28,492 nucleotides of DNA from Andalucia godoyi And28 (GCA_009859145.1 VRVR01000019.1:1-28492), one strand, 5' to 3'; shown: positions 6,578-27,336, counted from the first letter of the stretch. A program made the numbers and translations. The notes: a model not told the origin generated them from the letters alone.

Positions 6578-9500
6578 TTAGAATGGATCGTCGGCAGCTT
6601 CTGTTGCCGATCGTGGCGACAGTAGGTTTGGATCCGTGTTTCCCTTTGGCCACAGCTCTCGAGGCTGAGTAAGGCCACCAAAAAGCTTCTGCATGCGAAG
6701 GACTTCTCCGATCATGGTCCACACGGGATATGCATAGGCCAGCACGTCTTGGGCAGATTGGACGAACTTATCCTCCATACCAAGCGAATGAAGACCCACA
6801 ATCACGCCTCGCAGCAAATCCGTGTACTCGGTGTTCTTTCGAAAATTCGCATCCAACACGCGGTCGATAACCCACACCGCACCCGAGTCGCCCGGAGCGG
6901 GTATATATCCCTTGGTCTTATCCTCACGTTTGCGACAAGCCTTGCAAGGAGGCGAAACAAAAGGATACAATTCCAGGCCCGGTGGATGATCGATATCATC
7001 TGCGCTGATGACTTGCAGAACGGCAAGAGTCGTCCCTGTCGTAATTCCTTTTTTGCAGCAAACTACTTTGCATCCGCGATCCTCTTGCAAGTACCGCAAG
7101 CCCCGTTGCAGCAACTCTGCAGCAGTTTCAGATGGCCAATAAGGTTCAGAAACCGTTTCTTGGGATTCAACGTCACGAATTTGGAACACAAACGGCTGGA
7201 TGAAATCGTGATACTCCATCGGGATAGGGATGAATGCAAAGTCGTGGATCAACTTATGAGATTTCACCGACGATGCTTGCACTTCGACAGTGTGTTCCAC
7301 GCCATACAGATGAACCTTTTGATCGGTCAGGCAGAAATGAAATGCGTCGGAAAGAGAGATGCAACACTGCGCAATAAGCACTTTTGAAGACTCGGCTTTG
7401 GCTTCTCGTGTTGGCGTAGATGAATTCACATTTCTCATCACCGAAAACACACGAGAAACGGCAGACGATAGCCCCAATATTCGATCCAAAGGGAGAAGAA
7501 CATGTCCAGCAGTGACTGCGTAGATATCGTTCTGCTCTTCACCCAACGACACAAAACCCCCCACCGACGCAATATCGGCCCCTGAATTAGCATCGATTCG
7601 GACACAATGCGGAAAATGATTGACGATGGATCCTCCAATCTCTCTCGAATTGTCTGCGCTATGAACAGCCTGTGGGACAAACTTTGCCGAAACCACGGGA
7701 ATATTGATGCCGAATCTCCCCGTCTTCGAGTAACTCATCAGTTCAATTCCATACAGCTCCTTAAAACTGACGCACATTGAATTCAACAGCGCTACGCCAG
7801 ACTCTTTCGCAATGAACGGAGTCAGACACTGGAGACACAGAGTTCCGTCTTTGTTGAAATCAAAGGAACGAACAAGAATGTCCGCATTACCGACTTTGAA
7901 ATAATGGCCATGCTCAATCAAAAAATCCTCAAGATAGGATACGTTTGTGATTAATGACGAAGGCCGAACTGTAAGAGATGAACCGTCATGAGCAACCAAC
8001 AAACGATCCGATGGGACGACGCCGGAATTCTCTTTTTCGAGCCCCAACATACGCTCGCGTAGTATGTAATCTTCATCAGTTGCGGATATGGACGGGATTC
8101 TGCGCAGTTCCTCGGCTGGCAAAAAATAGGAACGGTATTGTTCGAATCCCAAGTCCAGTTTCAGCAAATGCCGCAATAAAACGTACGAAGAATAAACCTT
8201 CTTGTGACTCGGACCGCGGAATGCCAATATCGAACGACCAAATCGGTGACACTTTTCCCAATCCGAGTCCAAAACTAGACAACCAGGTTTGATACGTTGC
8301 ATTGCTCGCTTCAAAGACGCCTCCCATTCCACCAGCGGCTCTTTAAAATCCAATAACTTCGAAAGAACTTCTGCTAAATTGTTGAGATCCGGAACAACAG
8401 ATTCCAGAGAAAACAACACCCTGAAGGACGGATCTGTAAACGGGTCCTCAATTTGATCTTGAAGAATTCGCGAAAAAGGAATGGATGGGGGTCTGAACAA
8501 CGCATCCATAAATCTCTGAACCCTAATCAGACGGGTTTCAGGACGATCAGCCTGAGGATCAGACTTGAATCTCTGTTGAACGGATTGGCGAGCGGTGACA
8601 ATGACATCGTCGATAACCTGCGCTACATGCAAAGACATCCCGAGATATGCGTCACTTGTAATCTCATCATCGAAATTTGGAGAGAAAACTACTCGTTCCC
8701 GAAACTGGGAAGATAACCATGTTTGAAGGGATGTAAAACCCTCTCGAGAAAATTCCTTATAATTCAAGACAACATTCTCGACCAAAGATGAGAGTTGATC
8801 GGAAGTTCCTCGAAACAGCATTTCCATAAATCCGGGCATTGCAAAGATGGCCGTCCAAGTTTTTTGAATGGAAGTCTCCGACGAAGGATCGTATTTCAAT
8901 ATTGTGGAGAAAATGTGTTCACAATGACTAACAAACAGGTTTTCCAACTTGGCGCATAAACGTGCTCTTGCACTGTTTTGCAATTCCATCAAAGAAGCAC
9001 GAAATTTGACATCTTTCTTGGAATCCAGCTTCTTGAACACCCGCATCAACGACTGCAACTTGGTGACAGCTCGCTCGCAGTACTCAAGAATCTCCCTTAA
9101 CCTCGGATTGAACGAAGAGTTTAGCGCACTCATCAGAGGCACCATACCAGCGACACCACGGATATGGTCGTCGTTCTCCTCAAGAAGTCGACGAACTCGA
9201 GCGAGAACAGACTTTGTGATAGCCCCTCCTTCGGACACCAGCTCTTTGTCTACAAGGTGAAATAGCGCATTCACAGTGCAAAACAAGCTTTCATCAAGCT
9301 GAACTCCGAGTCTGCGGCAAAACTCGGCTCTGAAATTCTGTTCCACCGGGTCAATGTCATTGTCAGGTACTTCTGAACGCTCCAGCACTTTGACGACAAC
9401 TAAATTCGCAAGTAAATCGGAACGATCTGGCCGTCGAAGGAACTCCACGAGCGATGAAATGTGAACATCGTCCGAAGACTGCGAATACTTCATGACAAAC

Positions 9501-10468
9501 GCCGCACGATGAACCGTACGAAGAACATTCGCAATCGCATAGTGGCCCAGAAAGTGCTTGTCTCCGGTACCAGGCATGTCAATCAGGCACATTCCATGAG
9601 GAACGAGTGCTCTGTCAAATCTCCCGCGCACCGTAATCTTTTGCAGGAACAACGCTTCGATAGGCACGTTTCTGGAATACTCGCTGTTCTCACCGCGCAC
9701 AAGCTCTGCAAGGACAGCAGTTACGGATTCAATGGCCAGCCCATCGCGGTACTTGTAAGCTCGTTGATGCTGGAAGACGTCGACTTGCCGCTGCAACTGC
9801 GGAAAAGTAGGTACTTCGCAGTCGTCGTCGCACAGCGATCCAAATACGACATCCTGCCAGGAATTGCCCAGAAGACGGCGCAGCAGACCCCGAAGATAAT
9901 CGGCATCGACATGGAAGTTCAGGATCGGCTTTCCATCTGCGTCCTGAAAGTCGGATTCTCCCCAGCTCTTCCAAGCCGACGTTTCAGAATATGCAGAACC
10001 ACGAATCTGTTTCTTAACATACTCGTTCAGCTCCTTGGTGAGAACGACACGAGCGGCCAAAAGCAAATCCTTCATGACTTGATCGACCGAGAAGAAATCG
10101 AGTTCGAGAAAGTACTTTTCCGAAACTTTCCCCTGCGAATCAAGGATTTCCTGCCGAAACAGTGCGACGGGTACGTGCGTGGTTGCCGACCGGTCGTCTG
10201 AGATTGGCAAGAGTTTCGGTTCACCAAACAGCGCGTTGAGCAGGAAGCTCTTTCCCGCATTCGTGATGCCGAAAAACGCAACACCGGCACTCTGTCCATT
10301 GAGAAGATTGTCGAGGGGGATGAGGACATCGCGGCGAAGTGAATTCGTGACGACTTCATCGTGACGCGTACAAGCCAAAATCTGCGGGAGCAGTTTGGAC
10401 AGGGACAGCAGCCGCGAAAAGGTATCTGACGCAGCCGAAGCCGGGCTCAGCATCGCTGGATCCGACAT
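6578..10468 (-). CDS. Dynamin-like GTPase fused to a C-terminal trypsin-like serine protease (1296 aa)
   Basis: N-terminal GITNAGKSFLLNALFG (G1), ATT (G2), LIDMPGTGD (G3) with the long G2-G3 insert typical of dynamin_N domains, then a helical region. C-terminal SVGGFV...YAVTAGHVL (His), HDFAFI (Asp), PGDSGAVW (Ser). Uninterrupted ATG-to-TAA ORF. Confidence 0.85.
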   Translation of the reverse strand: MSDPAMLSPASAASDTFSRLLSLSKLLPQILACTRHDEVVTNSLRRDVLIPLDNLLNGQSAGVAFFGITNAGKSFLLNALFGEPKLLPISDDRSATTHVPVALFRQEILDSQGKVSEKYFLELDFFSVDQVMKDLLLAARVVLTKELNEYVKKQIRGSAYSETSAWKSWGESDFQDADGKPILNFHVDADYLRGLLRRLLGNSWQDVVFGSLCDDDCEVPTFPQLQRQVDVFQHQRAYKYRDGLAIESVTAVLAELVRGENSEYSRNVPIEALFLQKITVRGRFDRALVPHGMCLIDMPGTGDKHFLGHYAIANVLRTVHRAAFVMKYSQSSDDVHISSLVEFLRRPDRSDLLANLVVVKVLERSEVPDNDIDPVEQNFRAEFCRRLGVQLDESLFCTVNALFHLVDKELVSEGGAITKSVLARVRRLLEENDDHIRGVAGMVPLMSALNSSFNPRLREILEYCERAVTKLQSLMRVFKKLDSKKDVKFRASLMELQNSARARLCAKLENLFVSHCEHIFSTILKYDPSSETSIQKTWTAIFAMPGFMEMLFRGTSDQLSSLVENVVLNYKEFSREGFTSLQTWLSSQFRERVVFSPNFDDEITSDAYLGMSLHVAQVIDDVIVTARQSVQQRFKSDPQADRPETRLIRVQRFMDALFRPPSIPFSRILQDQIEDPFTDPSFRVLFSLESVVPDLNNLAEVLSKLLDFKEPLVEWEASLKRAMQRIKPGCLVLDSDWEKCHRFGRSILAFRGPSHKKVYSSYVLLRHLLKLDLGFEQYRSYFLPAEELRRIPSISATDEDYILRERMLGLEKENSGVVPSDRLLVAHDGSSLTVRPSSLITNVSYLEDFLIEHGHYFKVGNADILVRSFDFNKDGTLCLQCLTPFIAKESGVALLNSMCVSFKELYGIELMSYSKTGRFGINIPVVSAKFVPQAVHSADNSREIGGSIVNHFPHCVRIDANSGADIASVGGFVSLGEEQNDIYAVTAGHVLLPLDRILGLSSAVSRVFSVMRNVNSSTPTREAKAESSKVLIAQCCISLSDAFHFCLTDQKVHLYGVEHTVEVQASSVKSHKLIHDFAFIPIPMEYHDFIQPFVFQIRDVESQETVSEPYWPSETAAELLQRGLRYLQEDRGCKVVCCKKGITTGTTLAVLQVISADDIDHPPGLELYPFVSPPCKACRKREDKTKGYIPAPGDSGAVWVIDRVLDANFRKNTEYTDLLRGVIVGLHSLGMEDKFVQSAQDVLAYAYPVWTMIGEVLRMQKLFGGLTQPRELWPKGNTDPNLLSPRSATEAADDPF

Positions 10469-10947
10469 GTTCGCAGATGGAGGAAAGAGGTAGCGGTACG
10501 AATTCGATGGCCAATGAAATCAAAGTGAAAGTGGTGGTTGGAAAGGTGACGGATAGTCAAAGATCTATCAACCTTGTGAAGAAGTTCTGGCCCGAGATTG
10601 CTCGGTGAAAATTGAGAGAGCATGACGGGAGGTTGTGGAAAGCGCATCATCAATTCGCGGAATTCAGACTTTTGAGTGAGCAGCCTGTGCAAGCAGACGC
10701 GGCAATCTGCAAACCAGATGAGGAAATCCTTGTCTTTGCAAACAAAAAATGCAATGAGCAGTCATCTTGCTGGAAAAGACTTTTGGTCGTGACTTGTGAC
10801 TCACAAAAAGCCCAGTGTGGAATCGGGGACACGCTGCTTTTGTCTGTCCTTTACTTCTCTCTCTTTTCAAGATCCACATTCCACGGATCTGACTTTTCTC
10901 ATTTGGCTTTGTAAGTTGACGTAGTGCATGTCTTGTGAAGCTTTGAA

Positions 10948-13161
10948 ATGTCTGCAGCGTCGTCTACTGCCTCACAAGTGGAGAGAGTGTTAACCGAGTT
11001 GCAGTCAGGAAGATTCCCTAATCTTCTTGTCTTTGCTAGCCGCTGCCGGAGTGTGTCCTCGCGGGAAATCCGCAAACTGCAGAATTCATGGAAGGGTACT
11101 CGAATTGACATGCCAGTATGGGTTATTCCGTTGTGTTGTGTTTACCAAGATACTGGAACAAGACCCTTGTGTCTGCGTTTCAATCATTAGAAGGGCTTCG
11201 GATGCGGAGACGTCGAATGTACGTATGAACACATGTGCATGGTTTGCGGCAGCCTCGACCACGGTATGCATAGCAAGCGCACTGATGGAACAATGCTACT
11301 GCAATGCGGAGAACATGCATTACTGAAACAACAGTTCGAATTGATGGAAAACAACGGTTTTCGTTTGGAACATATACTGGAAGCAATCAGATCTGAAAGA
11401 TTCGTTGCAATCTTTCGAGCCCCAACTTCTTCGCAGATGTCCCCTGCTCGACAAGTTAGTGCTTCTCCGACGATACGTCCGCCTTTATGCGCTACTGGTT
11501 CAACTGGATCAATTTCTTCACCATTGTCTATGACCAACTCTACGAACAATGTTGCCGCTTCAGAAATGAATTCATCCTCCAACATTATGCCACCGCCAAG
11601 AGATGGGGACATGAATGCCAAGCGCAGCGATGAGGACGTCGATGATCACGATGCACAGCCTTTTGTGTACTCCATGTCCCGTGGAGAGAATGACGTCTTT
11701 GAATTGCAGTTGAATATTACGTTCACTCGTGCAAATTGCATTGCCCACACAAATCTGTCGAAAGTTTGGCGTTGCAGTCTCACGTCACCATTGTTTTCTT
11801 CTCCGCGTCCCATGGCGATTAAAATGTGGGAACAATCTTTCACAGCAAAACGAGAACAAGTTGCGAAGGATCTTCAAAAATTGCAGCGAGAGATTATGTC
11901 AATTCGCAAGCTTTGTGAAGAAACTCCACATGTGGTACGGATTGAGAGCTCTCCCACAAAGCTGCGAATCGGACCGAACACATATTTTTGCCTTTTGATG
12001 GAACTTTGCAAGCAGCCTCTCAGTCAATATGTAGTCGATACCCACTCTCGGTCAACGATGGATCAGTTTGGCGGACTTGCAAACAGCTCACCCGATGTTC
12101 CTCGTCCCGACAATTCACCCTCCTTGCCTTCTCCATCGGTTCGTCTGCTCGATGACGCTCATGTTCGTTCGATCACCTCACAAATCCTGGCTGCAGTCGA
12201 TGCTTGTCACCGGGCACACATCTCTCACAGAGACATCAAACCTGACAATATTTTGGTGTCTTTTCAGCGAGCGGATGATGATCGGCCTCTCCTTAAACTG
12301 TGTGATTTTGGCTTTTCCAAGATCATTGACTGCCCCGGGACTCGTGGTGAAATGCAAACAGTTATTGGAACAGATTTGTACCGTGCTCCCGAGATTGATT
12401 TGAAGGGAAAATACGAAGTATCTGCGGATATGTGGTCCGTTGGGTGCGTTTTGTATTTTGTGTTGATGGGCGGCACTCATTTATTCGACCGACACCAAGA
12501 CGTTCTCGACGTTGCGAATACAAGTTCGCTGAGTGGAGATGGCCATTCACGTGGCGATGAAAAAGTCGTTGGTCTGCTGACCCGCCACATTGACATTCGC
12601 TTACAGGCTTCAGTGATGTTTGACTTGTTACGCCGCCTTCTGCGAATTGAGCCAACGTTGCGCATTCGCAGCTTCGAGGCTTGTAAACATCCTGCGACGT
12701 GGAGTTGGAAGCGCATGGTCAGTAACATTCGAGTGTTGGTTGATTGTTACAATGATAACGTACCGAGTGCGCTGCGCATTGTAGAACATGTTGAAAAACG
12801 GACTCCATCCGTGCTACATCATTGTGCTGGAGACTGGTTGAGCGAGTTTGATGACACTACAAAGTCAATTTTGACGTCGGTTTGGAAGAAGAATCCGAGG
12901 TTCCAACCTTCCACTCGAACAACAGTTTCCATATTGCTTCGACAAATCCGAAACATGGTTGTGCACATGTCGGAGTCGATGAACCAGTTGCCAGGGTTTT
13001 CTCCGGAAACGATTGCTCATGATCTCGGTCAACGTCTACTGCCCAGGTTCCCGCTGCTTATGCCGGCTATTTTCGATTCTCTTATGGACCCTGCTAACGA
13101 GCGCTTTGTTTCTCTCACTCCAGTTCCCGATGGATGGGAACTATCCTTGAAAAGTGAGTAG
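10948..13161 (+). CDS. Soluble Zn-finger - Ser/Thr kinase - KEN ribonuclease (IRE1/RNase L-like); core ORF 11233-13161, in-frame upstream part 10948-11190
   Basis: Kinase motifs MAIK, alphaC LQRE, HRDIKPDN, DFG, APE, DMWSVG. KEN-like tail HPATWSW...DW...LLRQIRNMVVH...RFPLL (compare IRE1 LLRAMRNKKHH). N-terminal CCCH + CxxCGSxxH. No obvious TM segment. One in-frame TAG at 11188-11190. Confidence 0.85.
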
Positions 13162-14135
13162 AAATATCATTGGTGGCTATGCTCCTTTCCACTTCGTTTG
13201 TTGTCTCAAAAATACCCTCGGTTGACCCCTTGTTTTCGTTTTTTATTTGCATTACCCGGTAAAACCAGGTTGGAAAACAATCGGATCCTTTTTTTTTGTT
13301 TGTTTTTTCCTATTTTTTCCTTTGAACCGTTGCAGTGGACAACACATATGCAAATACACTACTACATTCATTCCGCAAGTGGCACTTCCGGAGAGACATG
13401 ATCATTGAGACGACTCGGGAGACACGCGCGCCAGCACGAGAGATTTCCTGTCCTATATCTTCACGTTCATGATTCGTCAGCATGAGCATTTCGTCGAGTC
13501 TCGCACTCATTCAAAGCCGCTGCTGATCAAGAGATTCTCTCGGAGGACTAAAATGCAACCGTGGTGCGAACTGACAGGAACGTTAGCCATTCACTGCCCA
13601 CTCCTCAGTGGTTTCACTTCTGGAGAAACTTGCTGCTTGGCATTTTGGTAAATGATTGCCCAACGCGCCATCGGTTGTAACATCCATTTAAATGCAGAGA
13701 GGAAGAGCGAAAACGAACAAAACAATGACAAGGAATTCGATTTTGCTTCGACTGCCTGCAGAGGAGGTTTCCTCCAGCACAAGCAAGCATCTTGCACGCC
13801 TTCCTTGTCTAAGCAGGGACTGCATTAACGGTATAAGCAATTCTTCGTTTCCGGAGTTCCGTGATCTCTCCGTTTGTCTGCTGGGTCGCAAACCCCTTCC
13901 GCTGTCCCTGCGGGCTACCAGCTGCTTGAAACAAAGCCTGTCTCCATGTCCTGCCCCAGATACAGGGAGGCCGTTGCAATTCGTCGTCGATCGTGCATCA
14001 ATCGCAGCTTCCAACGGGGAACGATTGTTCTCTCCTCATTTCTCCAGTTTGCAAGCCATGCTGGCAACTCATTAAAATTTCTTCTTTGATGCTCATCACC
14101 TTCGATCTGCACCGTTAACTATTCAGAAGGTGGTC

Positions 14136-15131
14136 ATGATGAATGGATGTTTGGCTGAGATCACACTTGGATCATCCAGTCCCGGATCTCCAGTACCATC
14201 CGATCTCTACAGAATCCCGGCTGATATCTCGAATCTCCAACGATTGTGGGATGGTGCATTCAAGGAAACACCATGGATATTGAGACTTTTCCTTCGTATC
14301 ACGATGTTTTGGTGGAATAGATCGTCGTTCTGGTGGAGTTTGTCGTCGTTCTATGTTGAAATGTCGAGAAATGTCCACGGATTCATGGACGATGGGGCTG
14401 TGCATTCTTGCAGTTTGTGATTTATTGGGTATCAAGGGCAAGGCAATGACTGTCTGATTGCAGTCGGCATGACAGCGCATTTTGCCATGTACTGGTTTGC
14501 TAGTCTTCCGTGGGTCATGAAAGCTTTGTCTTTCTTCTGGTCTGTTCTAAGTCTGTGCCTTCTAATAATTGATTTCGGGAGGCGTCTTCGCGGGTCCTTG
14601 AAGTGTTTCGAAAAAAACTTCGAATTCCCGCCGGAACTAAAGATCGAATGGCACATTATGTCGAACACGGCAGATCGTTTGTCTAGAACTTGGTCTCCGT
14701 TGACATGTCTGACGTTCCTTGCGGTTTTCGTGATCTTACTCTTCAATTTGATTTCCATCCTCAAGAGCAATGCCGATATCTTCATCAATCTGGGGCTGAG
14801 CTTTCTCATTGCTGGAGGGATGATAGGTGCTCTTTTCGTATTAGCGATGCCGCACGCTATTGCAACGAGAGTGTTCGAGAATGTCGTCAATGCCAATGAC
14901 CTCAAGTTCATCGTTCAAGATGAAAAAAAGTTGACACAAAAAAAGCATGACAAGGCATTGAAGAAGCGTCAGGATCCCCTGCTGGAGGAAATCAGATCGT
15001 TCGCACAAAATCATCCCATCAGTCTGTCACTTGCAGGCTATTCCATGACGTTGAGAAAGGTGGCATCTATCCTTATCGGAACGTTAACACTGCTGATTTC
15101 CATATTGGCACTTCAGGGAGTGAAAGTTTGA
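14136..15131 (+). pseudogene. Degenerate multi-TM protein, paralog of 15587-16990 (GRL/7TMIC-like)
   Basis: Clear similarity to the minus-strand paralog (LPWVM...WS..SLC..IIDFG.RL; EWH....TA..LS.TW.PLTC.TFL; SLAG.S.TL..V..I..G.LTL..S.LALQG). In-frame TGA at 14418-14420 and an apparent internal deletion of the first TM helices. Confidence 0.75.
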
Positions 15132-18789: not shown

Positions 18790-21700
18790 CTATATAAAAA
18801 CAGGAAGTTCTAGAAGATCTGCCACTTCGCGTAAAACTTCCGGATACAGACGCAAGAACGCGCAGAATGCCTGAACCGGAGACTTCGAAGCTTGCGATTT
18901 CAGAACCATGGGATTCAAAAGGACGCGCCGCTTCCACAGTTCCACAGCCGCCTGTCGATCTCCCATTGCTATAACATGATCAGCAGTTCCGGTATCAAAC
19001 GAATTCAATGCACGCACAACAGCGATGAACACAGTGTCAAAATGATTGAAAAAGTACTTCAAGAATGGAGCAAGATTATTTTGCAATGCATCATTCAGTT
19101 GCTGTCTGGTCCACTCTTTCGGCGCTGCATCAGAGCGAGAGGTCGCTGCAGCCTTCGGTTCGGACTTCTGGTACTCATCAAACTGCGCCATTCTCTGCAG
19201 GAACGCAGGCTTCTGAGCGAGAGGAACGGATCTGGCATTTCCATGAGCGACGAAACCAAGTTGATTTTCATGTCCAAATTTCACCGACTGACCAAGCACG
19301 ACCATGGAACCAGCAGGAATGCCAGTGTCCATGCTCACCAACTTTTTGAAAAGATCGATAATGGGCAGTGGCGCAGCTTCCGCACAACGCCACAAGCGGA
19401 CCGCAAAAAACGGGCCGTTCACACCGCCCGGCATGATTGCAATGCGAACACGATGGCGACTACAATCATCGACCAACTCTATTTCTCGTTCTGCAATCGG
19501 AAACTCCGACGCCAGTGGGTCCACTTCATCTCCGATGCAGAGGACTTCGGTTGTCAGCTGAGCAGCAACATGCAGAAAACTGCAAAGTCGATAGAATACG
19601 TGAGGAGAGACAGTCGGAACTGACGGTACTTCTGACCCACGTCGGGTTTGAATTTGAATGGCCAATGAACAGCTTCTGAGCTGAGTGGAATCAATAGCTG
19701 CTTCGGAAAGATAATCCCTCACAACATTGCTCGTCCTCAGGATGTGTAGACGAGGAGTAAACAAGAAGAATGGAGGATGATCGGTGACGTGCATTTGCAC
19801 GACTCTAATCGGGATGAGAATGCCCATCAAGCAGAGCGTGGAGACCAAGCAATTCTTCTCTTCATCACACAAGCCGTCTTTGGACACTGGATCCACACAG
19901 AGGATGCGACGCACCTCATCTTCCTGTATCGCACCGATTCGCTGCCAAAGTGCATCGAAAAAAGATGAATTTGGTTGCAGGTACCCATTGGCAGACGAAC
20001 GCAGAAATCGATGACTGATCAGAACTGCACAACGTTGCACAAATTCAATAGGCCGAATGACAATCACTGCCTCCGTTTCAGGTACCGCTTCTGCTGCGCT
20101 TCCATTCATACAATTGCCAGAACAAAAGCCAAAAAACGACCCGGATTCAATGAGGGCTCTCAGCGCATCGCGGGCCTCGGCATCGGAACCAAGCTTTAGA
20201 GCAGGAACAACGTAGGAAAGAATCTCTTGATCGGATACCACGCTTCGTGCGCTCCATTCCTGCCGCTGAAGCACAAATGCTTCCAAAAAGAGGTATCGGA
20301 GTGGAACTGGACGGCTTGCAGAAACGAGGTCACCAAATTGTCGCAAAATGAACGTGGAAAAGCTCTTCATGAACTTCAATCGATCGTCATCATACATACC
20401 GCTACCCTCGAGATGCGGATCATTCTCCAGGACGTAGAACGGTCGATCGGGATGAACATCTGCATCACCGCGCGCTCTGCTAGGATTGTCCACTCCCACA
20501 TACACCTCCAAGTTGGCAAAACTCTCTCTGCATTTGAAGATACTGTCTCTGACAGCGTTGCCAACACGATCGACAGAAGAATGCGCCTTGAATTGGCTCC
20601 CTCGTGTGCCAGCAAGAATAACAACTGAACGCTGCGATGGCTGTGAACCCGCATTTGCGAGCATGCTTGAGATTCGCTGCAACCACGACAAGATGCACCG
20701 ATCGATCTCGGACGCAAGGCTGTCAGCTGAAACACTCGCCTTGGCGCACAAACTCAGCAAGTCAAACACCAGAACATACATGCTGGACGGAGCAAAAAAC
20801 AAGGGATCGAGACAGCGATACAAATCTTGACCAGCGAAATCAAATACAGAAATACAGCTTGATTGGATGTGCGAGGCTGCATTCCGAATCTCGGCAAGCG
20901 TGTCATCGATGCCGCCGTTCGAAGCAAGGGGCGACTCCCGGGCTGTCCTGTCCTGCCGTGAATCATCAGCCGAGCCTTCCACAGCATCTGGCATGATGGC
21001 GTTCTCAGAGTCTCGCATAACCGCCGAGAGTGAAGATGACGATGACAACGAGTGAGATTGAGAGACAGTGGAGTTGCGGGCCCTTGCAGCGGACCGCAGG
21101 AACAGCGATACTGCTCCAGCCGCAGCACCACGCTCCGATGAAGCATCCGTCCACGATCGACCATCCACGCCAACTGCAATTTCCATCATGTGAACGCCGC
21201 CAACTTCGGTGCTTTGCCGGTCTGCGTCGTCTGTTCCTTCTTGAGTATGGCAGAACTGCTGCTTGCCGACGCCGCGCAGCAGCTGGATGGTTGACGTTTT
21301 TCCAGCGCGGGTTTCTCCCACAAACAGAACTCGACGACGCGGCAGCTTTGCAGATACCGTGCCGAAATCCCAGGAAAGAATGAGGGTCTTGGAAGGAATC
21401 TTGTGCCGTCTCCGTGTTGGAGGAAGCTTGGAGAGCAACAAGCATGCAAGTTGCGCACGGATATCATTGTCAGAAAGTGAGTTGATCAACGAAATGCGGT
21501 GAGGCAGAGTGATACCCGGCAGAACTGCAGAACTGTCGACAATGTAGTCAAACGAGCGAACGAATACATCGTGCCCCTCTTCGCCCACTGTCTGCTCAAC
21601 GACAAGGTGAAGTCCAAAGGATGCTGATGGATCAGGAGGCAAGCGCAGCACATAGTTCAATGAGAAATGATGAACGGCATCTGAGGAATTGACAGTCATT

Positions 21701-22572
21701 CCCCCTGCAATTCCAATGCGATTCGCCGCTTTATCGTCTTTGGCAGATGCCATCTGACGTGCAATCGAAAAGCGCACCAATGATCTGGATAAATACCTGC
21801 AGATGGACTGCATGCGATGAGGAGTTAATGATAGACCAAGAGCAACTTCACTTAAAACTGAAGACTTGCGGTCTCTAATGAACTGTAACGGGTGGCTATC
21901 GGAATCATCAGTCTCGTCCGCCGTCATCAGACAGAAGTGTATTATTCGTAATCCGTCAAAGACGACTGGAACAGAATAGAACTCGCGGAGGAATAAACCT
22001 TCAGATGATAACAGCGTTGGATTTGGGAGCTCATCAAGACTCCCATGGACCGTAAGTACAGTGTGACCTCGTCTTGGGGACTCTGACAGTGCGTGCTGGA
22101 CAATTTGGAAAAAGGCAGGCAGAAAATAGGCAGTGTCCGATCCGAAAAACAAGACATCCCACTCTAGAGGTGCAAAACGTAAAGTCCAAATCATTTTGCA
22201 ATACAGCGAACGCCCAGGAAAGATCATCTCAGCATTCATAGTAACGCCATTCGACTGTACATTGAAGTTTCCGTCACTATCCAAAGTGACACATTCTGGA
22301 ACCGAGTGCGGAGAGAATGAAACAAGAAGAGGAATACCGACTGTCTCTGCCAACCATGGCATCTCTTCAAACGAGACATCAGGATTCCTACGACAGTATA
22401 TATCCAAAAGCACAACTCGGTGCGGCATCTCCTTCTTCCACAGTAGTAAGAAATCCAATGCGTCACCGAGGTTATCCTCTTCAGTTGAAATCACGCACAG
22501 CCTGTTCGTACCTGGGCCGCATGGAGTGAACACGAGACCTTTACTTGTGCCCCACTCCGGGAAATACGACAT
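18790..22572 (-). CDS. Roco-family Roc-COR GTPase with uncharacterised N-terminus and C-terminal CARD/death-fold-like domain
   Basis: VLFVGETRAGKTS (G1), STEVG (G2), VFDFAGQDLY...LFF...MYVLVFDL (Roc G3), WLQRI, VILAGT (G4), COR-like PVPLRY...LRALIESG...IRPIEFV. First ATG at 22572; the frame is open to about 22626 and a strong splice-acceptor-like tract lies just upstream, so the true start may be spliced. Confidence 0.85.
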   Translation of the reverse strand: MSYFPEWGTSKGLVFTPCGPGTNRLCVISTEEDNLGDALDFLLLWKKEMPHRVVLLDIYCRRNPDVSFEEMPWLAETVGIPLLVSFSPHSVPECVTLDSDGNFNVQSNGVTMNAEMIFPGRSLYCKMIWTLRFAPLEWDVLFFGSDTAYFLPAFFQIVQHALSESPRRGHTVLTVHGSLDELPNPTLLSSEGLFLREFYSVPVVFDGLRIIHFCLMTADETDDSDSHPLQFIRDRKSSVLSEVALGLSLTPHRMQSICRYLSRSLVRFSIARQMASAKDDKAANRIGIAGGMTVNSSDAVHHFSLNYVLRLPPDPSASFGLHLVVEQTVGEEGHDVFVRSFDYIVDSSAVLPGITLPHRISLINSLSDNDIRAQLACLLLSKLPPTRRRHKIPSKTLILSWDFGTVSAKLPRRRVLFVGETRAGKTSTIQLLRGVGKQQFCHTQEGTDDADRQSTEVGGVHMMEIAVGVDGRSWTDASSERGAAAGAVSLFLRSAARARNSTVSQSHSLSSSSSLSAVMRDSENAIMPDAVEGSADDSRQDRTARESPLASNGGIDDTLAEIRNAASHIQSSCISVFDFAGQDLYRCLDPLFFAPSSMYVLVFDLLSLCAKASVSADSLASEIDRCILSWLQRISSMLANAGSQPSQRSVVILAGTRGSQFKAHSSVDRVGNAVRDSIFKCRESFANLEVYVGVDNPSRARGDADVHPDRPFYVLENDPHLEGSGMYDDDRLKFMKSFSTFILRQFGDLVSASRPVPLRYLFLEAFVLQRQEWSARSVVSDQEILSYVVPALKLGSDAEARDALRALIESGSFFGFCSGNCMNGSAAEAVPETEAVIVIRPIEFVQRCAVLISHRFLRSSANGYLQPNSSFFDALWQRIGAIQEDEVRRILCVDPVSKDGLCDEEKNCLVSTLCLMGILIPIRVVQMHVTDHPPFFLFTPRLHILRTSNVVRDYLSEAAIDSTQLRSCSLAIQIQTRRGSEVPSVPTVSPHVFYRLCSFLHVAAQLTTEVLCIGDEVDPLASEFPIAEREIELVDDCSRHRVRIAIMPGGVNGPFFAVRLWRCAEAAPLPIIDLFKKLVSMDTGIPAGSMVVLGQSVKFGHENQLGFVAHGNARSVPLAQKPAFLQRMAQFDEYQKSEPKAAATSRSDAAPKEWTRQQLNDALQNNLAPFLKYFFNHFDTVFIAVVRALNSFDTGTADHVIAMGDRQAAVELWKRRVLLNPMVLKSQASKSPVQAFCAFLRLYPEVLREVADLLELPVFI

Positions 22573-22903
22573 TCCTCTTCTGCACAACTGTGTTGCAAAC
22601 AAGGAATAAAACAAAACGAAAAGATTCTACCAGAAAGAAGGTGAGGCAAAAATGCAAATGCTCCCCTGTCCGAACCCGATGACACATGTGGCTGACTTGA
22701 TGTGACAGACTGACATCTGGCGGAGGTGCTGAGCTGTCGTCATAGCAGATCCTCCATCAACGGCATCCCAACCTCTCAACACGGAGTCCATTCGCGAAAG
22801 TCCAGCCAGCCAGCGAATCGTTTGGGCGCCGCTGATTCTTTTTTTCGTCTTTTCCTGCTGCCCAGTTTTTCCTTTGGAGGCGAGCGTTCCCAACCATTTG
22901 TGA

Positions 22904-23644
22904 CTTTGTGCATCGCGCCCCGCCACGTCTTCTTCTTCGGCCTGGACGCGAAAGGAGCTGGAAACTGCGTTTGACGCGTACCTGCCCGCGTTCCTCGAGT
23001 ATTTTGTGCATCATCATGATTCTGCTTTCGTAGCAGCTGTTCACTACTTGCACACCATTGACCCTGGACAGTCGAATGCCGTGCTGGCAATGTCCGATCC
23101 AGAAGCTGCTGTGATGCGGTGGATGCAGAGGATCGTCATTTGTCCCCTGCATCCAGAGGCAGCGCCTCGTTTCTACGAATTTCTGTCTCGAAAGTCGGAG
23201 CTTTTGGCGGATGTCAGGGTCATGCTGTTTCCCTCCTCAAACACGCCCGTTCATACAACAAGCACCGGAACCACTGCTGCTCTCTCTGGAACTTCTGAAG
23301 TGCATGGAGGAGCATCAGGATCATCAACATCCAGCACACCAGTGAACCGCGTATTTACTCGCCGCGAGGTCACGTTTGAGCATGTGAATGCACCCGCGAT
23401 CAAGACAATTCTTGTCGTTGTGGCAAAGGACCATGAATGGGAATATGCAACTGGTATCGCTGACGATGTTGGGTGGAATGAGGGGAACCGAGGAACGGTT
23501 GGCGCTGGCGATGCCATGCGATACATCGAGTATTCATACAATGGATCAAGAATCGTCTTTGCTGCGGCGTACGCGATGTGCCAGCCGGCCGTGGACAAGT
23601 ATCACGCGCTTATCCACGAGTTTATTTCAACACACATAACGACG
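22904..23644 (+). CDS. N-terminal CARD/death-fold-like domain + Ser/Thr linker + short alpha/beta segment (possibly nucleoside phosphorylase-like); first part of a disrupted or spliced gene
   Basis: Frame open from 22904 (after TGA 22901). WTRKELETAF...WMQRIVICP aligns ungapped to the Roco C-terminus. No in-frame ATG before about 23090, so the start is unresolved. Protein-like character appears to shift to another frame near 23645. Confidence 0.7.
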
Positions 23645-23685
23645 GTAGGGAAAGAGAGCGGATGCACGAGCGGATGGAGCGCAAG

Positions 23686-24945
23686 ACCGGGCCAAATGCG
23701 TATCGTCTGTCGATTCCTGGCCGGTTTCACTCCATTTTTGACACAATCAACCAGCGGCTTCTTGGCGAGCTGCTCAACACCACCGATCCCAGTGCTGTTG
23801 GTGTCGAACACCTGCTGTTCGATGCGACGTGGTGTTACCAAACAGCGGTCGCCGATCTGCCGATCCGCATCGTCGACCAGGCCATCGTGCGGCCCCTTGG
23901 CGAGCTGTTCGCGAAGTTTCAGGAGATGCTGGTCATGGATCCCAGTTGCAACCGTGCGTCGACATGCACGCTGCGGCACTGGATTACCGAAGCTTCTGAA
24001 ATGCTGCTGCGCTTCATTGAGCTGCTGGGCAACGTTCGTGATCGTCGAGTCCACCTGGATCACTGCTCCAGTCCACGTCTTGGCACGCTGTCGTCAGACC
24101 TCGTGGTGGCGGGACGAAGCAGCGGTGACCACGTTTTCGGTTGCCTGCAGTCTCTGCTGGTATTGCTCGACGCACCTTGCCTTGCTGACCTCCGTCCACG
24201 AGCCAGCAGTCTCTTGGCTGACGATGTTGTTCGGCTTTGCGACACCATTCGCAAGGCGCACCGCGCGTTGCTCACATTTACGAAGCGACCTGTGAGCGAG
24301 CATGATTCTGGGTCTCCAGCGCTGTCGACATTGCCATCGACGGCGTCCTCCGTGATAAGCGCTGTCCGACATCGATCGAAAAAAAGGCGGCAGGGCTCGC
24401 AAGATCTGGTGACCGTCCAGTCTGCGTTTGACACGCTTCTCCCGTTCTTCAATCTGTACGACGACGATGCGATGCTGGCCAGCGTGGCGTCCATCATGTC
24501 CATTGCCAAGATGCTCGACACAGAGATCACCGTCCTGGGCGACGCGGCGGTGATGACCACAACGATCATGGACGGGACGGGAACGCATTCGTACGGCGGC
24601 AAGGACGTGGCGTATCGCGGGCCTGTCTTTTGCCAGCAGGTGTTTCCGCGTCTCCTCGCACTGCTGAAGCGCCGGCCGCTCGACGAAGTGCGTTCACGTT
24701 TCGCGATTATCCTTGGCGTTTGTAGCGGTCTCTCGTATCGCGATCACTACTTGATGTCTATTGCGAACGAATTGCTGGCGGTTGCTGGCGGAAACACATT
24801 TGCGCCGTTTGTCAACTCGTTCGCGCGAATCCTCTTCAATTTGTACAAGCCTATGTGCAAGCCGTACGTTGGATGGGTCGATCACCCGTTGTGCTCGCAG
24901 CGGTTCATCACTTCAATGACGGGTCTCCCGGGATCCAACATCTAA
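23686..24945 (+). CDS. Predominantly helical protein segment, unknown function (probable middle part of the 22904-26963 gene)
   Basis: Long ORF (23578-24945) with Leu/Ala-rich, protein-like composition. In the same frame as the following ORF and separated from it by a single TAA. Confidence 0.6.
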   Translation, partial: TGPNAYRLSIPGRFHSIFDTINQRLLGELLNTTDPSAVGVEHLLFDATWCYQTAVADLPIRIVDQAIVRPLGELFAKFQEMLVMDPSCNRASTCTLRHWITEASEMLLRFIELLGNVRDRRVHLDHCSSPRLGTLSSDLVVAGRSSGDHVFGCLQSLLVLLDAPCLADLRPRASSLLADDVVRLCDTIRKAHRALLTFTKRPVSEHDSGSPALSTLPSTASSVISAVRHRSKKRRQGSQDLVTVQSAFDTLLPFFNLYDDDAMLASVASIMSIAKMLDTEITVLGDAAVMTTTIMDGTGTHSYGGKDVAYRGPVFCQQVFPRLLALLKRRPLDEVRSRFAIILGVCSGLSYRDHYLMSIANELLAVAGGNTFAPFVNSFARILFNLYKPMCKPYVGWVDHPLCSQRFITSMTGLPGSNI

Positions 24946-24987
24946 CAAACACTTCTTCTGCTCCGCACAGCGCATCTGGCAGCCGTT

Positions 24988-26963
24988 ATGGCGGTGATGC
25001 GTGTCCTCTCTTCGATCGCGATCCTCGAGCCGATCGCACTTGTTCCCTACCGTGCTTTCTTTGGTGGACTCTTGTTCTCGGCGAGCCTTCCTCCCGCCGC
25101 CGCCGATTCGTTGTGCGTTGTCTGCACAGCGATCGGCAAGACCTGCCTCGACAACGCGACGTACTTTGTTCGCACTGCACTGACTGCTCTGAAGCATGGT
25201 ACACCGGTCACGAACGGCCTGATGCAATTGCGGTCGGGTGTTGTATCGATATGCTCCAGCCTCGTCAGCACATACCCGACCGTCCTGCGTCCCGCGACCA
25301 TGGAGGACGCACTTGGTAACCGGTCGTCTGTCGTCGTCTTCAAATCGCTGACACGGAATGATTTTGTGCTTCTACCGCTGCCCGAGCTCGAGGGCGTGGA
25401 CTTGGCGCCGCAACTGTCGTTCGTCCTCATCGCGAATGGAGACTCTGTGGATGCGGTGGAGTTCGATGCCGTGATCGTGCTTCAGGAGTTGCTGCGGGAT
25501 CCCGTGGAGGCTGTGCGCAGCCAAGCCAAGGATTTGCTGGACACCGTTGTGGCGGGGAAGCCGGTGAACTCGCATCCAGTTGAGCTTGCCATCCGCGATG
25601 CCATGGTCGAGGAGCGGCTCACCACAATGCAAAAGATGTTGGAGGGGGGTTTGATGGCGTCATGCAGCGAGATGGTCGAGATGCGAACGGCGATCGAACT
25701 GATTGTCGGACAAGTGGATGCCGAGCGTGTGGCACACCAGTCGCTCGCTGACGAGGTCGGACAGGTGAAGGAGCGTGTTGCCGAAATGGCGATCGACTTG
25801 GCGCAAGTGCAGAGCGATGTCAACGAACTTGATGCGCAGCAACTGCAGCAAGAAGACATTCGTGAGCTGCGCGGGATCCTCGAATCGCAGCTCTCGGATC
25901 TCCGCAAGCAAGTGGGCGAGTTTGTCCGCCGCGTGCCGGTGCCGCGCCGCATCGTTGTGCGTGATGCGAATGTTCTCCGCGTGTCCGTCGAGCTTCATTT
26001 CTCTTGCGACTGCTCATGCAACGGCCGTGCTGGTCACGGCGACGATACCGCAGCTGATTTTCAGACCTCCGCGAGTGTTGCTTGTTTGGCGACGACGCAG
26101 TGCCGCTCTTTGCAGTGCGGACCGCGAACTGGCGCAAATGGATCAAGGTCAGCGTGGCGTCCCTCTCGCTTGCTGTCTCGCTTGCGACGGCATCGGCCGC
26201 TCATGCCATGACTTCCATTGCGAATATCTACCAGAAGCTCAAGGCGCCAAGTGACGGCGAGTTTGCAAGCATGTGCCGTCAGCTGCAAGAAAATCATGGC
26301 GGTGCACTGATGACCTCGGTCGAGCAAGACGAACTTCTAGGGTCGCTGCGTGCTGCTGGGTTCTTCCAAACGTTTTCGTGGGACCCGGAGATGATGCAAT
26401 GGTGCTGCGCCTCGTGTCGGTCGCACGTGCCTCGCATCCTTGAGCGCGAGGCTCGCAGCAAGATGTTTGTGTCTCTGGCCGAGCAGCTGCGTGTGGTTCA
26501 AGTGCGGCACGCTGCGTTGCAGTTGGATCTGTCGACGCTGGATCACCGCCTACCATGCGAGGGATCGATAACGAAGCAGGGACACAAAGTCAAGAACTGG
26601 AAACAGCGGGTCGCACACCTCGATGTGGACCATTTCTGGTATGCGACTGCGGTGGGACAGCCGCCGATCCGCGTCGTCCCTGTCGCCTCCATTTCTTGCA
26701 TCGCGCCGTATGATCGTCATTCCAACGAGGATTTGAAACTGAACCTGCAGAATCAGAATGAAGACCTCGCGCTTTATCTCGAAACACAAGGCAACGACAA
26801 GTGGTCGTTGCTGTTTGTCGTGGATTCGGAGGCCGAAAGGCAGAAATGGACGACCGCGCTGTCGGATGCGAAGCGCCGACCACTGCTCGTGGTCGATGTG
26901 AGTCGGGTCCGCGATGAAATGACGGCTGTCGAGCAACGGATGCTGGAGGCCGATCAGACTTGA
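24988..26963 (+). CDS. Coiled coil + Cys/Trp-containing domain + C-terminal PH domain (two ORFs joined by a frameshift or short intron near 26075-26115)
   Basis: Heptad-rich segment (VGQVKERVAEMAIDLAQVQSDVNEL), then LHFSCDC...WRKWIKV...WCCASC, then a PH signature GSITKQGHKVKNWKQR...FWY...DSEAERQKWTTALS. Confidence 0.75.
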
Positions 26964-27336
26964 AGAAGTGGCGATGACGATGTTCGCGGAAATGCACGTC
27001 GATGATTGCATTTGCAGCAGCCATTCAGTTCACTGCAAGTCCAGCTGGAACGATGGAGCAGAAGAATGAACGCAAGACTCACCTTCTCACAAGAATGAGT
27101 GATGCGTCGTGGTCCAAAGACGTTCGGAGAATCAATGCATGGGGTGCGACGATGGGATCGAACAGATGGTTGGCGTCGGTTTGAGGGACTTTGCATGAAT
27201 TCCTGATGTTTTTTGCTTTGTTTCATTAGCAAACTGCCTTCTGAGAAGGTCACCACCAGGTTGAGCTTTACGTCTACACGATGCCGAACTTGGACACCAA
27301 AAAAACAAGACATTTCCTCCATACTAAACATGCTGT

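Follow-up and report, generated by a model that had tools for sequence, protein, structure and literature searches.

The jakobid Andalucia godoyi probably encodes, in a subtelomeric position, a soluble, cytosolic protein of the IRE1/RNase L (kinase-KEN) superfamily that has diverged strongly from the other members, a reading to which we assign a probability of about 0.6. The window considered here is the whole stretch of DNA that was analyzed (28,492 nt), and it carries a single-copy gene in whose product a KEN domain lies directly C-terminal to a protein kinase domain (residues 192-487, then 486-619), which is the arrangement of the kinase-KEN superfamily. All coordinates and motifs listed in the first-pass annotation of this gene were found where that annotation had placed them. 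The main ORF has the following features:

11233-13161, + strand: main ORF, 642 aa, single exon, annotated as protein P0001 (EukProt Andalucia godoyi)
11419-11652, + strand: low-complexity linker (ORF residues 63-140), Ser/Thr/Pro/Asn-rich, then acidic
11695-12702, + strand: protein kinase domain (Pfam Pkinase, 1.4e-36, residues 192-487)
11740-11766, + strand: degenerate Gly-rich loop IAHTNLSKV, in which GxGxxG reads A-H-T-N-L-S
11821-11823, + strand: Lys of the kinase motif AIK
12223-12249, + strand: kinase motif SHRDIKPDN
12301-12318, + strand: kinase motif CDFGFS
12379-12393, + strand: kinase motif YRAPE
12688-13158, + strand: KEN (kinase-extension nuclease, HEPN-type) domain, residues 486-642, beginning at HPATW at the kinase end
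12949-12966, + strand: R573-N574-M-V-V-H578 (RNMVVH), the KEN/HEPN catalytic motif

The kinase and KEN domains

To judge from profile and fold comparisons, the last 157 aa form a genuine KEN domain, although a very divergent one. The Pfam profile PF06479 (Ribonuc_2-5A/KEN) aligns ORF residues 515-617 to profile positions 22-113 of 127, where such a domain is expected, straight after the kinase; the match (E = 0.0013, 19.3 bits) lies below the cut-off of 23.3 bits, and precomputed annotation therefore lists only kinase families for this protein. A phmmer search of the PDB with the C-terminal 157 aa gave nothing relevant, and an exhaustive phmmer search of 1.84 billion representatives recovered the query itself and a chance match to a repeat protein (P0121), and no relative. 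Because single-sequence searches were blind to the KEN domain, we built a KEN HMM from a profile search that yielded 87 full-length domains, reduced to 53 at <70% identity, with the query excluded. This HMM aligns residues 486-619 to its positions 1-124 of 138 and scores the whole ORF at 23.7 bits and the C-terminal piece alone at 27.6 bits, compared with at most 8.2 bits for any of 2000 shuffles and at most 5.2 bits for any of 119 generic kinases (the best database hits of the kinase-KEN protein, used as controls). A check by HMM, as proposed in the first-pass annotation, thus bears out the KEN domain with our own profile (27.6 vs. ≤8.2 bits in controls) and not at the Pfam cut-off. With branch-specific profiles, the protein scores 17.9 bits with an IRE1-only and 21.3 bits with an RNase L-only KEN HMM, and the domain would seem to belong clearly to neither the IRE1-type nor the RNase L-type branch.

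An AlphaFold model of the kinase C-lobe plus KEN domain, computed with a 54-row alignment, has a pLDDT of 86.9 and superposes on the IRE1 structures 3lj0, 2rio, 3fbv, and 4z7g; the best 50 PDB matches listed for the predicted fold are all IRE1 kinase-RNase structures (E-values of 2e-5 to 6e-4, TM-scores of 0.5-0.6), a support that is partly circular because the alignment is made of IRE1 relatives. The single-sequence AlphaFold model was unusable (pLDDT 35.6).

The seven columns that are invariant (100%) in the 53 KEN domains are all kept (W490, L568, L569, R573, N574, H578, and F606). The motif RNMVVH therefore places its Arg, Asn, and His in invariant columns, in agreement with the earlier proposal of a kinase followed by a KEN domain that keeps R-N-x3-H, and these residues (R573, N574, and H578) are equivalent to R1056, N1057, and H1061 of yeast Ire1. 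About half of the 32 columns with at least 80% conservation are kept, and overall the domain is no more than about 20% identical to other KEN domains. Ile567 takes the place of the Asp of DLL (98% D), Met575 that of the Lys that follows RN (92% K), and Gln558 that of a 94% Arg; the Tyr column (92% Y; yeast Y1043) reads Ser560, in a loop whose alignment is uncertain because an insertion of about 7 residues adjoins it. In yeast Ire1, the scissile phosphate is held by R1056 and N1057. The mutation H1061N reduces cleavage there by a factor of at least 3e5 and Y1043F by one of only about 10, so that loss of the Tyr need not abolish RNase activity (PMC3149027). By analogy with IRE1 and RNase L, a protein without the Tyr, Asp, and Lys may be a less active RNase or one of altered specificity.

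The kinase domain shows a similarly mixed state. It keeps Lys197, Glu220, HRD (332-334), DFG (358-360), and APE (385-387), and its P-loop is glycine-free, with 3/3 glycines lost; both the retained residues and the degenerate Gly-rich loop had been noted at first pass. An insert of about 40 aa precedes the catalytic loop. With an IRE-family C-lobe HMM the query scores 28.6 bits, compared with at most 15.7 bits for the 119 generic kinases, and the kinase is therefore IRE-like too. Less specific searches returned the common kinase core: phmmer with the whole ORF against the PDB gave generic kinases only (CDKL, MAPK, and CaMK), with no IRE1 in the best 60 matches listed, a word-index search with the whole ORF gave the protein itself and generic kinases only, and a metagenome scan with the kinase-KEN protein gave the generic kinase core only. 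No paralog or ortholog of the protein was found in database searches, and the viral contigs searched held no relative of it or of its GTPase neighbor. Given the mixed state of the KEN and kinase active sites, RNase activity is plausible, not assured, and phosphotransfer by the kinase may be impaired.

These active sites bear on an explanation in which the protein is a signaling kinase or pseudokinase scaffold, its KEN-derived domain being non-cleaving and serving for dimerization or RNA binding only. The degenerate P-loop recalls the pseudokinase of RNase L, and the Tyr, Asp, and Lys that are missing here are 92-98% conserved in KEN domains. Furthermore, HEPN domains without a full active site are probably RNA binders (PMC3710099). 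However, HEPN domains of the non-catalytic kind usually lose the R, N, and H of RNxxxH, all of which are kept in the A. godoyi protein and are the largest contributors to Ire1 catalysis (PMC3149027), and we regard a scaffold as quite improbable.

The N-terminal region and the in-frame stop

Upstream of the kinase, the gene is less easily read, as an in-frame TAG interrupts a region rich in Cys and His. The relevant features are:

10469-10947, no strand: spacer of 479 nt between the divergent 1296-aa GTPase gene and the upstream ORF
10948-11190, + strand: upstream ORF of 80 codons, in frame with the main ORF and ending in TAG
11134-11316, + strand: Cys/His-rich cluster, with 8 Cys and 5 His in 65 codons
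11170-11232, + strand: C-x10-C-x4-C-x3-H, present only with the TAG read as X
11188-11190, + strand: in-frame TAG that interrupts the Cys/His cluster, after the first Cys of the proposed CCCH and before the second
11236-11271, + strand: C-x2-C-x4-H-x2-H, within the Cys/His cluster
11305-11316, + strand: C-x2-H, within the Cys/His cluster

Cys is enriched in the cluster, with 8 in 65 residues compared with 14 in the other 672 (Fisher p = 3e-4, for a window chosen post hoc). Three Cys and one His lie upstream of the TAG, and five Cys and four His downstream. The annotated protein begins at the Met that immediately follows the His of the CCCH; because the TAG cuts the cluster, this protein keeps only the C-terminal half of it.

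A zinc-finger unit of CCCH/knuckle type had been proposed for this region, and the pattern does appear when the TAG is read as X, in which case 11170-11262 reads CLRFNHXKGFGCGDVECTYEH-MCMVCGSLDH. The CCCH regular expression alone is weak (5 matches in the six-frame translation of the window vs. 2.2 expected); the adjacent pair of CCCH and CxxCx4H arose 0 times in 30 shuffles of the window. With X at the stop, neither a zinc-finger or other Pfam model nor a PDB chain matched the N-terminal region at E ≤ 10. No database protein matched it either, a weak negative in that the search also missed P0001 despite 74 shared identical residues. A continuous C-x(4-15)-C-x(4-6)-C-x3-H arises in this region only when the TAG is read as a residue.

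Splicing does not restore the pattern. Introns of surveyed A. godoyi genes are all GT..AG and 55-756 nt long (PMC7050145), and of the GT..AG pairs around the TAG that are in frame and 55-400 nt apart, 76 in all, none keeps all four CCCH ligands; to splice out the TAG with an intron of 55 nt or more is to lose a Cys ligand as well. The best donor among these pairs, CAG/GTATGG, opens the 75-nt intron (GTATGG...CATTAG) at 11116-11190, which is in frame and deletes the first Cys, just as described at first pass. As the sequence stands, the CCCH/knuckle "module" is only a pattern that needs read-through of the TAG. The N-terminal ~150 residues as a whole are an orphan region, without relatives in the searches.

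Three points favor past coding by the upstream ORF: the 83 codons preceding the TAG at 11188 are all open, the ORF has its own ATG, and a start at 11233 would leave 764 nt to the neighboring gene, more than the reported spacer range of 44-691 nt (PMC7050145). By an estimate from base composition, an open run of 83 codons would occur by chance in only a few percent of cases. By codon usage, in a test with too little signal, the upstream ORF does not stand apart from non-coding sequence, and it may therefore never have been coding; alternatively, it may once have been the N-terminus, or it may be a first exon or a uORF. The most economical reading of the N-terminus is that a nonsense mutation cut a former Cys/His module; an intron and a uORF are less likely alternatives.

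Extended to the whole gene, a nonsense mutation at 11188 in a Cys/His-kinase-KEN ancestor that started from 10948 would make this a decaying or N-terminally truncated gene, either a pseudogene or one whose product is re-initiated at Met 11233 without its sensor and much of its activity. Several observations accord with such decay. The TAG falls inside a statistically real Cys/His cluster and follows 83 open codons that start with ATG; were the gene to start at 11233, 764 nt would separate it from its divergent neighbor, outside the 44-691 nt reported for 47 closely packed A. godoyi gene pairs (PMC7050145). The gene is subtelomeric, with a helicase gene cut by the telomere at the same chromosome end; its KEN domain lacks the conserved Tyr, Asp, and Lys, its P-loop has no glycines, and neither paralog nor ortholog was found. 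Against decay, beyond the TAG the frame is open for 656 codons (11191-13158), and the kinase catalytic residues and 7/7 invariant KEN positions are kept at an overall KEN identity of only about 20%. To judge from codon usage, moreover, the upstream ORF may never have been coding. We consider decay of the gene the main rival explanation of the locus, although a somewhat unlikely one.

The read-through product contains no signal peptide, TM helix, or luminal domain, and its hydropathy, averaged over 19 residues, peaks at 1.46 within kinase helix F. Besides Pkinase and KEN, no further Pfam domain matches the ORF even at E ≤ 10, and this includes the ankyrin repeats that bind 2-5A in RNase L. The first-pass statement that luminal domain, TM helix, and ankyrin repeats are all missing is therefore upheld. 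It is exceedingly unlikely that the gene is an ordinary ER-membrane IRE1 with its signal peptide, luminal domain, and TM helix in unrecognized upstream exons. We found no support for such exons; only 479 nt separate the upstream ORF from the start of the 1296-aa opposite-strand gene, and there is therefore no room for luminal and TM exons of the IRE1 type. In addition, the read-through product has no hydrophobic segment of TM length, and introns occur in only 12% of the 864 A. godoyi nuclear genes surveyed (PMC7050145). The absence of membrane parts together with the 479-nt spacer indicates that this is not an ordinary IRE1, and the upstream signal peptide or TM exon that the first-pass annotation had named as counter-evidence to its view did not come to light.

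At the 3' end of the gene, a GTGAGT at 13154 overlaps the stop codon, and a long polypyrimidine tract ending in TTGCAG (13335) lies 180 nt downstream; 13154-13335 (+ strand) could be an intron in the 3' UTR. A coding intron between the same sites was considered and rejected, as the KEN domain is complete before the stop and the frame beyond is not coding-like.

The chromosome-end setting

The window opens with ~185 nt of telomere repeat, (CCCTAA)n, at positions 1-185, with CCCTAAA variants in the innermost units, and the region is therefore a chromosome end of the ~20 Mb A. godoyi genome (PMC7050145). The kinase-KEN gene lies 11 kb from the telomere. Six ORFs of the window, including the kinase-KEN ORF, are present in EukProt (Andalucia godoyi) exactly as read here, and Rfam, tRNA, and repeat scans of the window found nothing besides the telomere. 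The neighboring genes include:

188-2071, + strand: helicase-remnant ORF, 613 aa, whose product begins at profile position 95/195 of AAA_12 (SF1-helicase C-terminal domain)
6578-10468, - strand: GTPase gene, 1296 aa, with an N-terminal GTPase (weak MMR_HSR1 and Dynamin_N matches) and its start codon at 10468
14469-15131, + strand: hydrophobic ORF, 220 aa; A. godoyi has a paralog of ≥90% identity (ANDGO_08361, 277 aa)
18790-22614, - strand: 1274-aa ORF with a weak Roc-type GTPase match at residues 576-624

The helicase gene at 188-2071 appears to be truncated at the chromosome end, its N-terminal half missing because the telomere begins right upstream. The helicase-remnant ORF is followed, on the same strand and in the same frame, by an ORF for a 983-aa triple-AAA ATPase (AAA and AAA_lid_6); between the end of the former (2071) and the ATG of the latter (2123) there is a single TGA plus 51 nt (2069-2125, + strand). 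The two ORFs are annotated as two proteins and could, from their arrangement, be one former gene. A second in-frame stop, a TAA at 24943-24945, splits two long open frames in a G+C-richer stretch. Stop-codon reassignment was considered for the TGA (2069) and the TAA (24943) that separate these long ORFs and was rejected, because the flanking ORFs are annotated as separate genes, because the 51-nt gap fits the reported spacer range of 44-691 nt (PMC7050145), and because open frames of 1278 and 1313 codons run without internal stops.

The 1296-aa GTPase has a second A. godoyi counterpart, P0243 (1291 aa), which is at least 90% identical, and the GTPase gene is therefore duplicated elsewhere in the genome. 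Its C-terminal region carries TAGHV and GDSGA motifs that by eye recall a trypsin-like serine protease, a likeness for which Pfam and PDB searches gave no match. Overall, the distal 23 kb forms a cluster of large NTPase or effector-like genes (helicase/AAA, GTPase, kinase-KEN, and the Roc-type ORF). G+C content is 0.45-0.52 in the distal 23 kb and rises to 0.54-0.59 at about 23000-27000, which may mark the boundary between subtelomeric and core sequence.

Proposed function and relation to known kinase-KEN proteins

Under the favored reading, that of a soluble and divergent kinase-KEN protein, the kinase domains would, as in IRE1 and RNase L, bind nucleotide and self-associate and thereby pair two KEN domains. 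Paired KEN domains would then act, by analogy with these enzymes, as a metal-independent endoribonuclease that leaves 2',3'-cyclic phosphate ends, with H578 as the proton-transfer residue and R573 and N574 holding the scissile phosphate. The only candidate for a sensor would be the ~150-aa N-terminal region, composed of the Cys/His cluster, a short helical stretch, and the low-complexity linker.

A more ambitious version of this function can be put forward, in which a deep-branching protist of the Discoba has retained a working kinase-KEN RNase in its cytosol, with direct sensing of nucleic acid by the N-terminal Cys/His module, and in which the subtelomeric NTPase cluster that includes the gene would act as an RNase L-like, ligand-triggered RNA-decay defense with an origin separate from the OAS pathway of vertebrates. 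This is very doubtful, and it would require programmed read-through of the TAG or an alternative isoform; direct activation by RNA, as suggested at first pass, is conjecture. The NTPase cluster named in that proposal comprises the SF1 helicase/triple-AAA ORFs, the GTPase with the GDSG motif, and the Roc-type GTPase.

Soluble kinase-KEN proteins are already known from slime molds and animals. Dictyostelium discoideum has seven IRE-family kinases, all with an RNase(L) domain, of which six are apparently not membrane-bound (PMC1420674; Goldberg et al., 2006). Like the A. godoyi protein, these non-membrane kinases join a kinase to a C-terminal RNase(L)/KEN domain, lack both signal peptide and TM helix, and are specific to their lineage; PMC1420674 describes no signal that activates them. 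However, an exhaustive search with the KEN region detected no specific sequence relationship between the two, their N-terminal regions differ, and the A. godoyi gene is single-copy, subtelomeric, and outside any expanded family.

With RNase L, the A. godoyi protein shares its solubility and the order of a kinase-like domain with features of impaired phosphotransfer followed by KEN, and the RNase L-only KEN HMM scores it slightly above the IRE1-only HMM (21.3 vs. 17.9 bits). Unlike RNase L, it has intact HRD and DFG motifs and no ankyrin repeats, and therefore no recognizable 2-5A sensor. The origin of RNase L proper predates the common ancestor of jawed vertebrates, and the same 2023 study reported RNase (KEN) homologs, mostly with a kinase domain, across a wide range of eukaryotes (PMC10400998). 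With IRE1, the protein shares the kinase-KEN core, an equal R-N-x3-H spacing, an IRE-like C-lobe, and a predicted fold that superposes on IRE1 structures. It differs from IRE1 in lacking the signal peptide, luminal domain, and TM helix, in three conserved KEN positions (the Tyr that is Y1043 in yeast, the DLL Asp, and the Lys that follows RN), all of which are lost, and in a KEN identity of only about 20%.

Kinase-KEN fusions with "CCCH in some" have also been listed (PMC3710099, Table 1; Anantharaman et al., 2013), and if the TAG is ignored the A. godoyi architecture would be the same (Cys/His module, kinase, and KEN). Compared with these fusions as described there, where accessions are not given for the CCCH examples, the A. 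godoyi CCCH contains a stop, is unusually spaced (x10, x4), and has no zf-CCCH HMM match. The novelty implied in the first-pass annotation was thus overstated, since both soluble kinase-KEN proteins (PMC1420674) and CCCH fusions (PMC3710099) had already been described. What is new here is modest: a jakobid example that falls below the Pfam threshold and has an unusual active-site make-up.

If this is a decaying subtelomeric gene, it is an ordinary one. As a soluble kinase-KEN protein, it adds a jakobid to the organisms that carry soluble IRE-family kinase-RNases, and it indicates that such proteins can diverge past the KEN threshold of Pfam. If active, the protein would be a natural test of whether the KEN Tyr, Asp, and Lys are dispensable, and it would help in asking what triggered cytosolic kinase-KEN enzymes before the 2-5A system.
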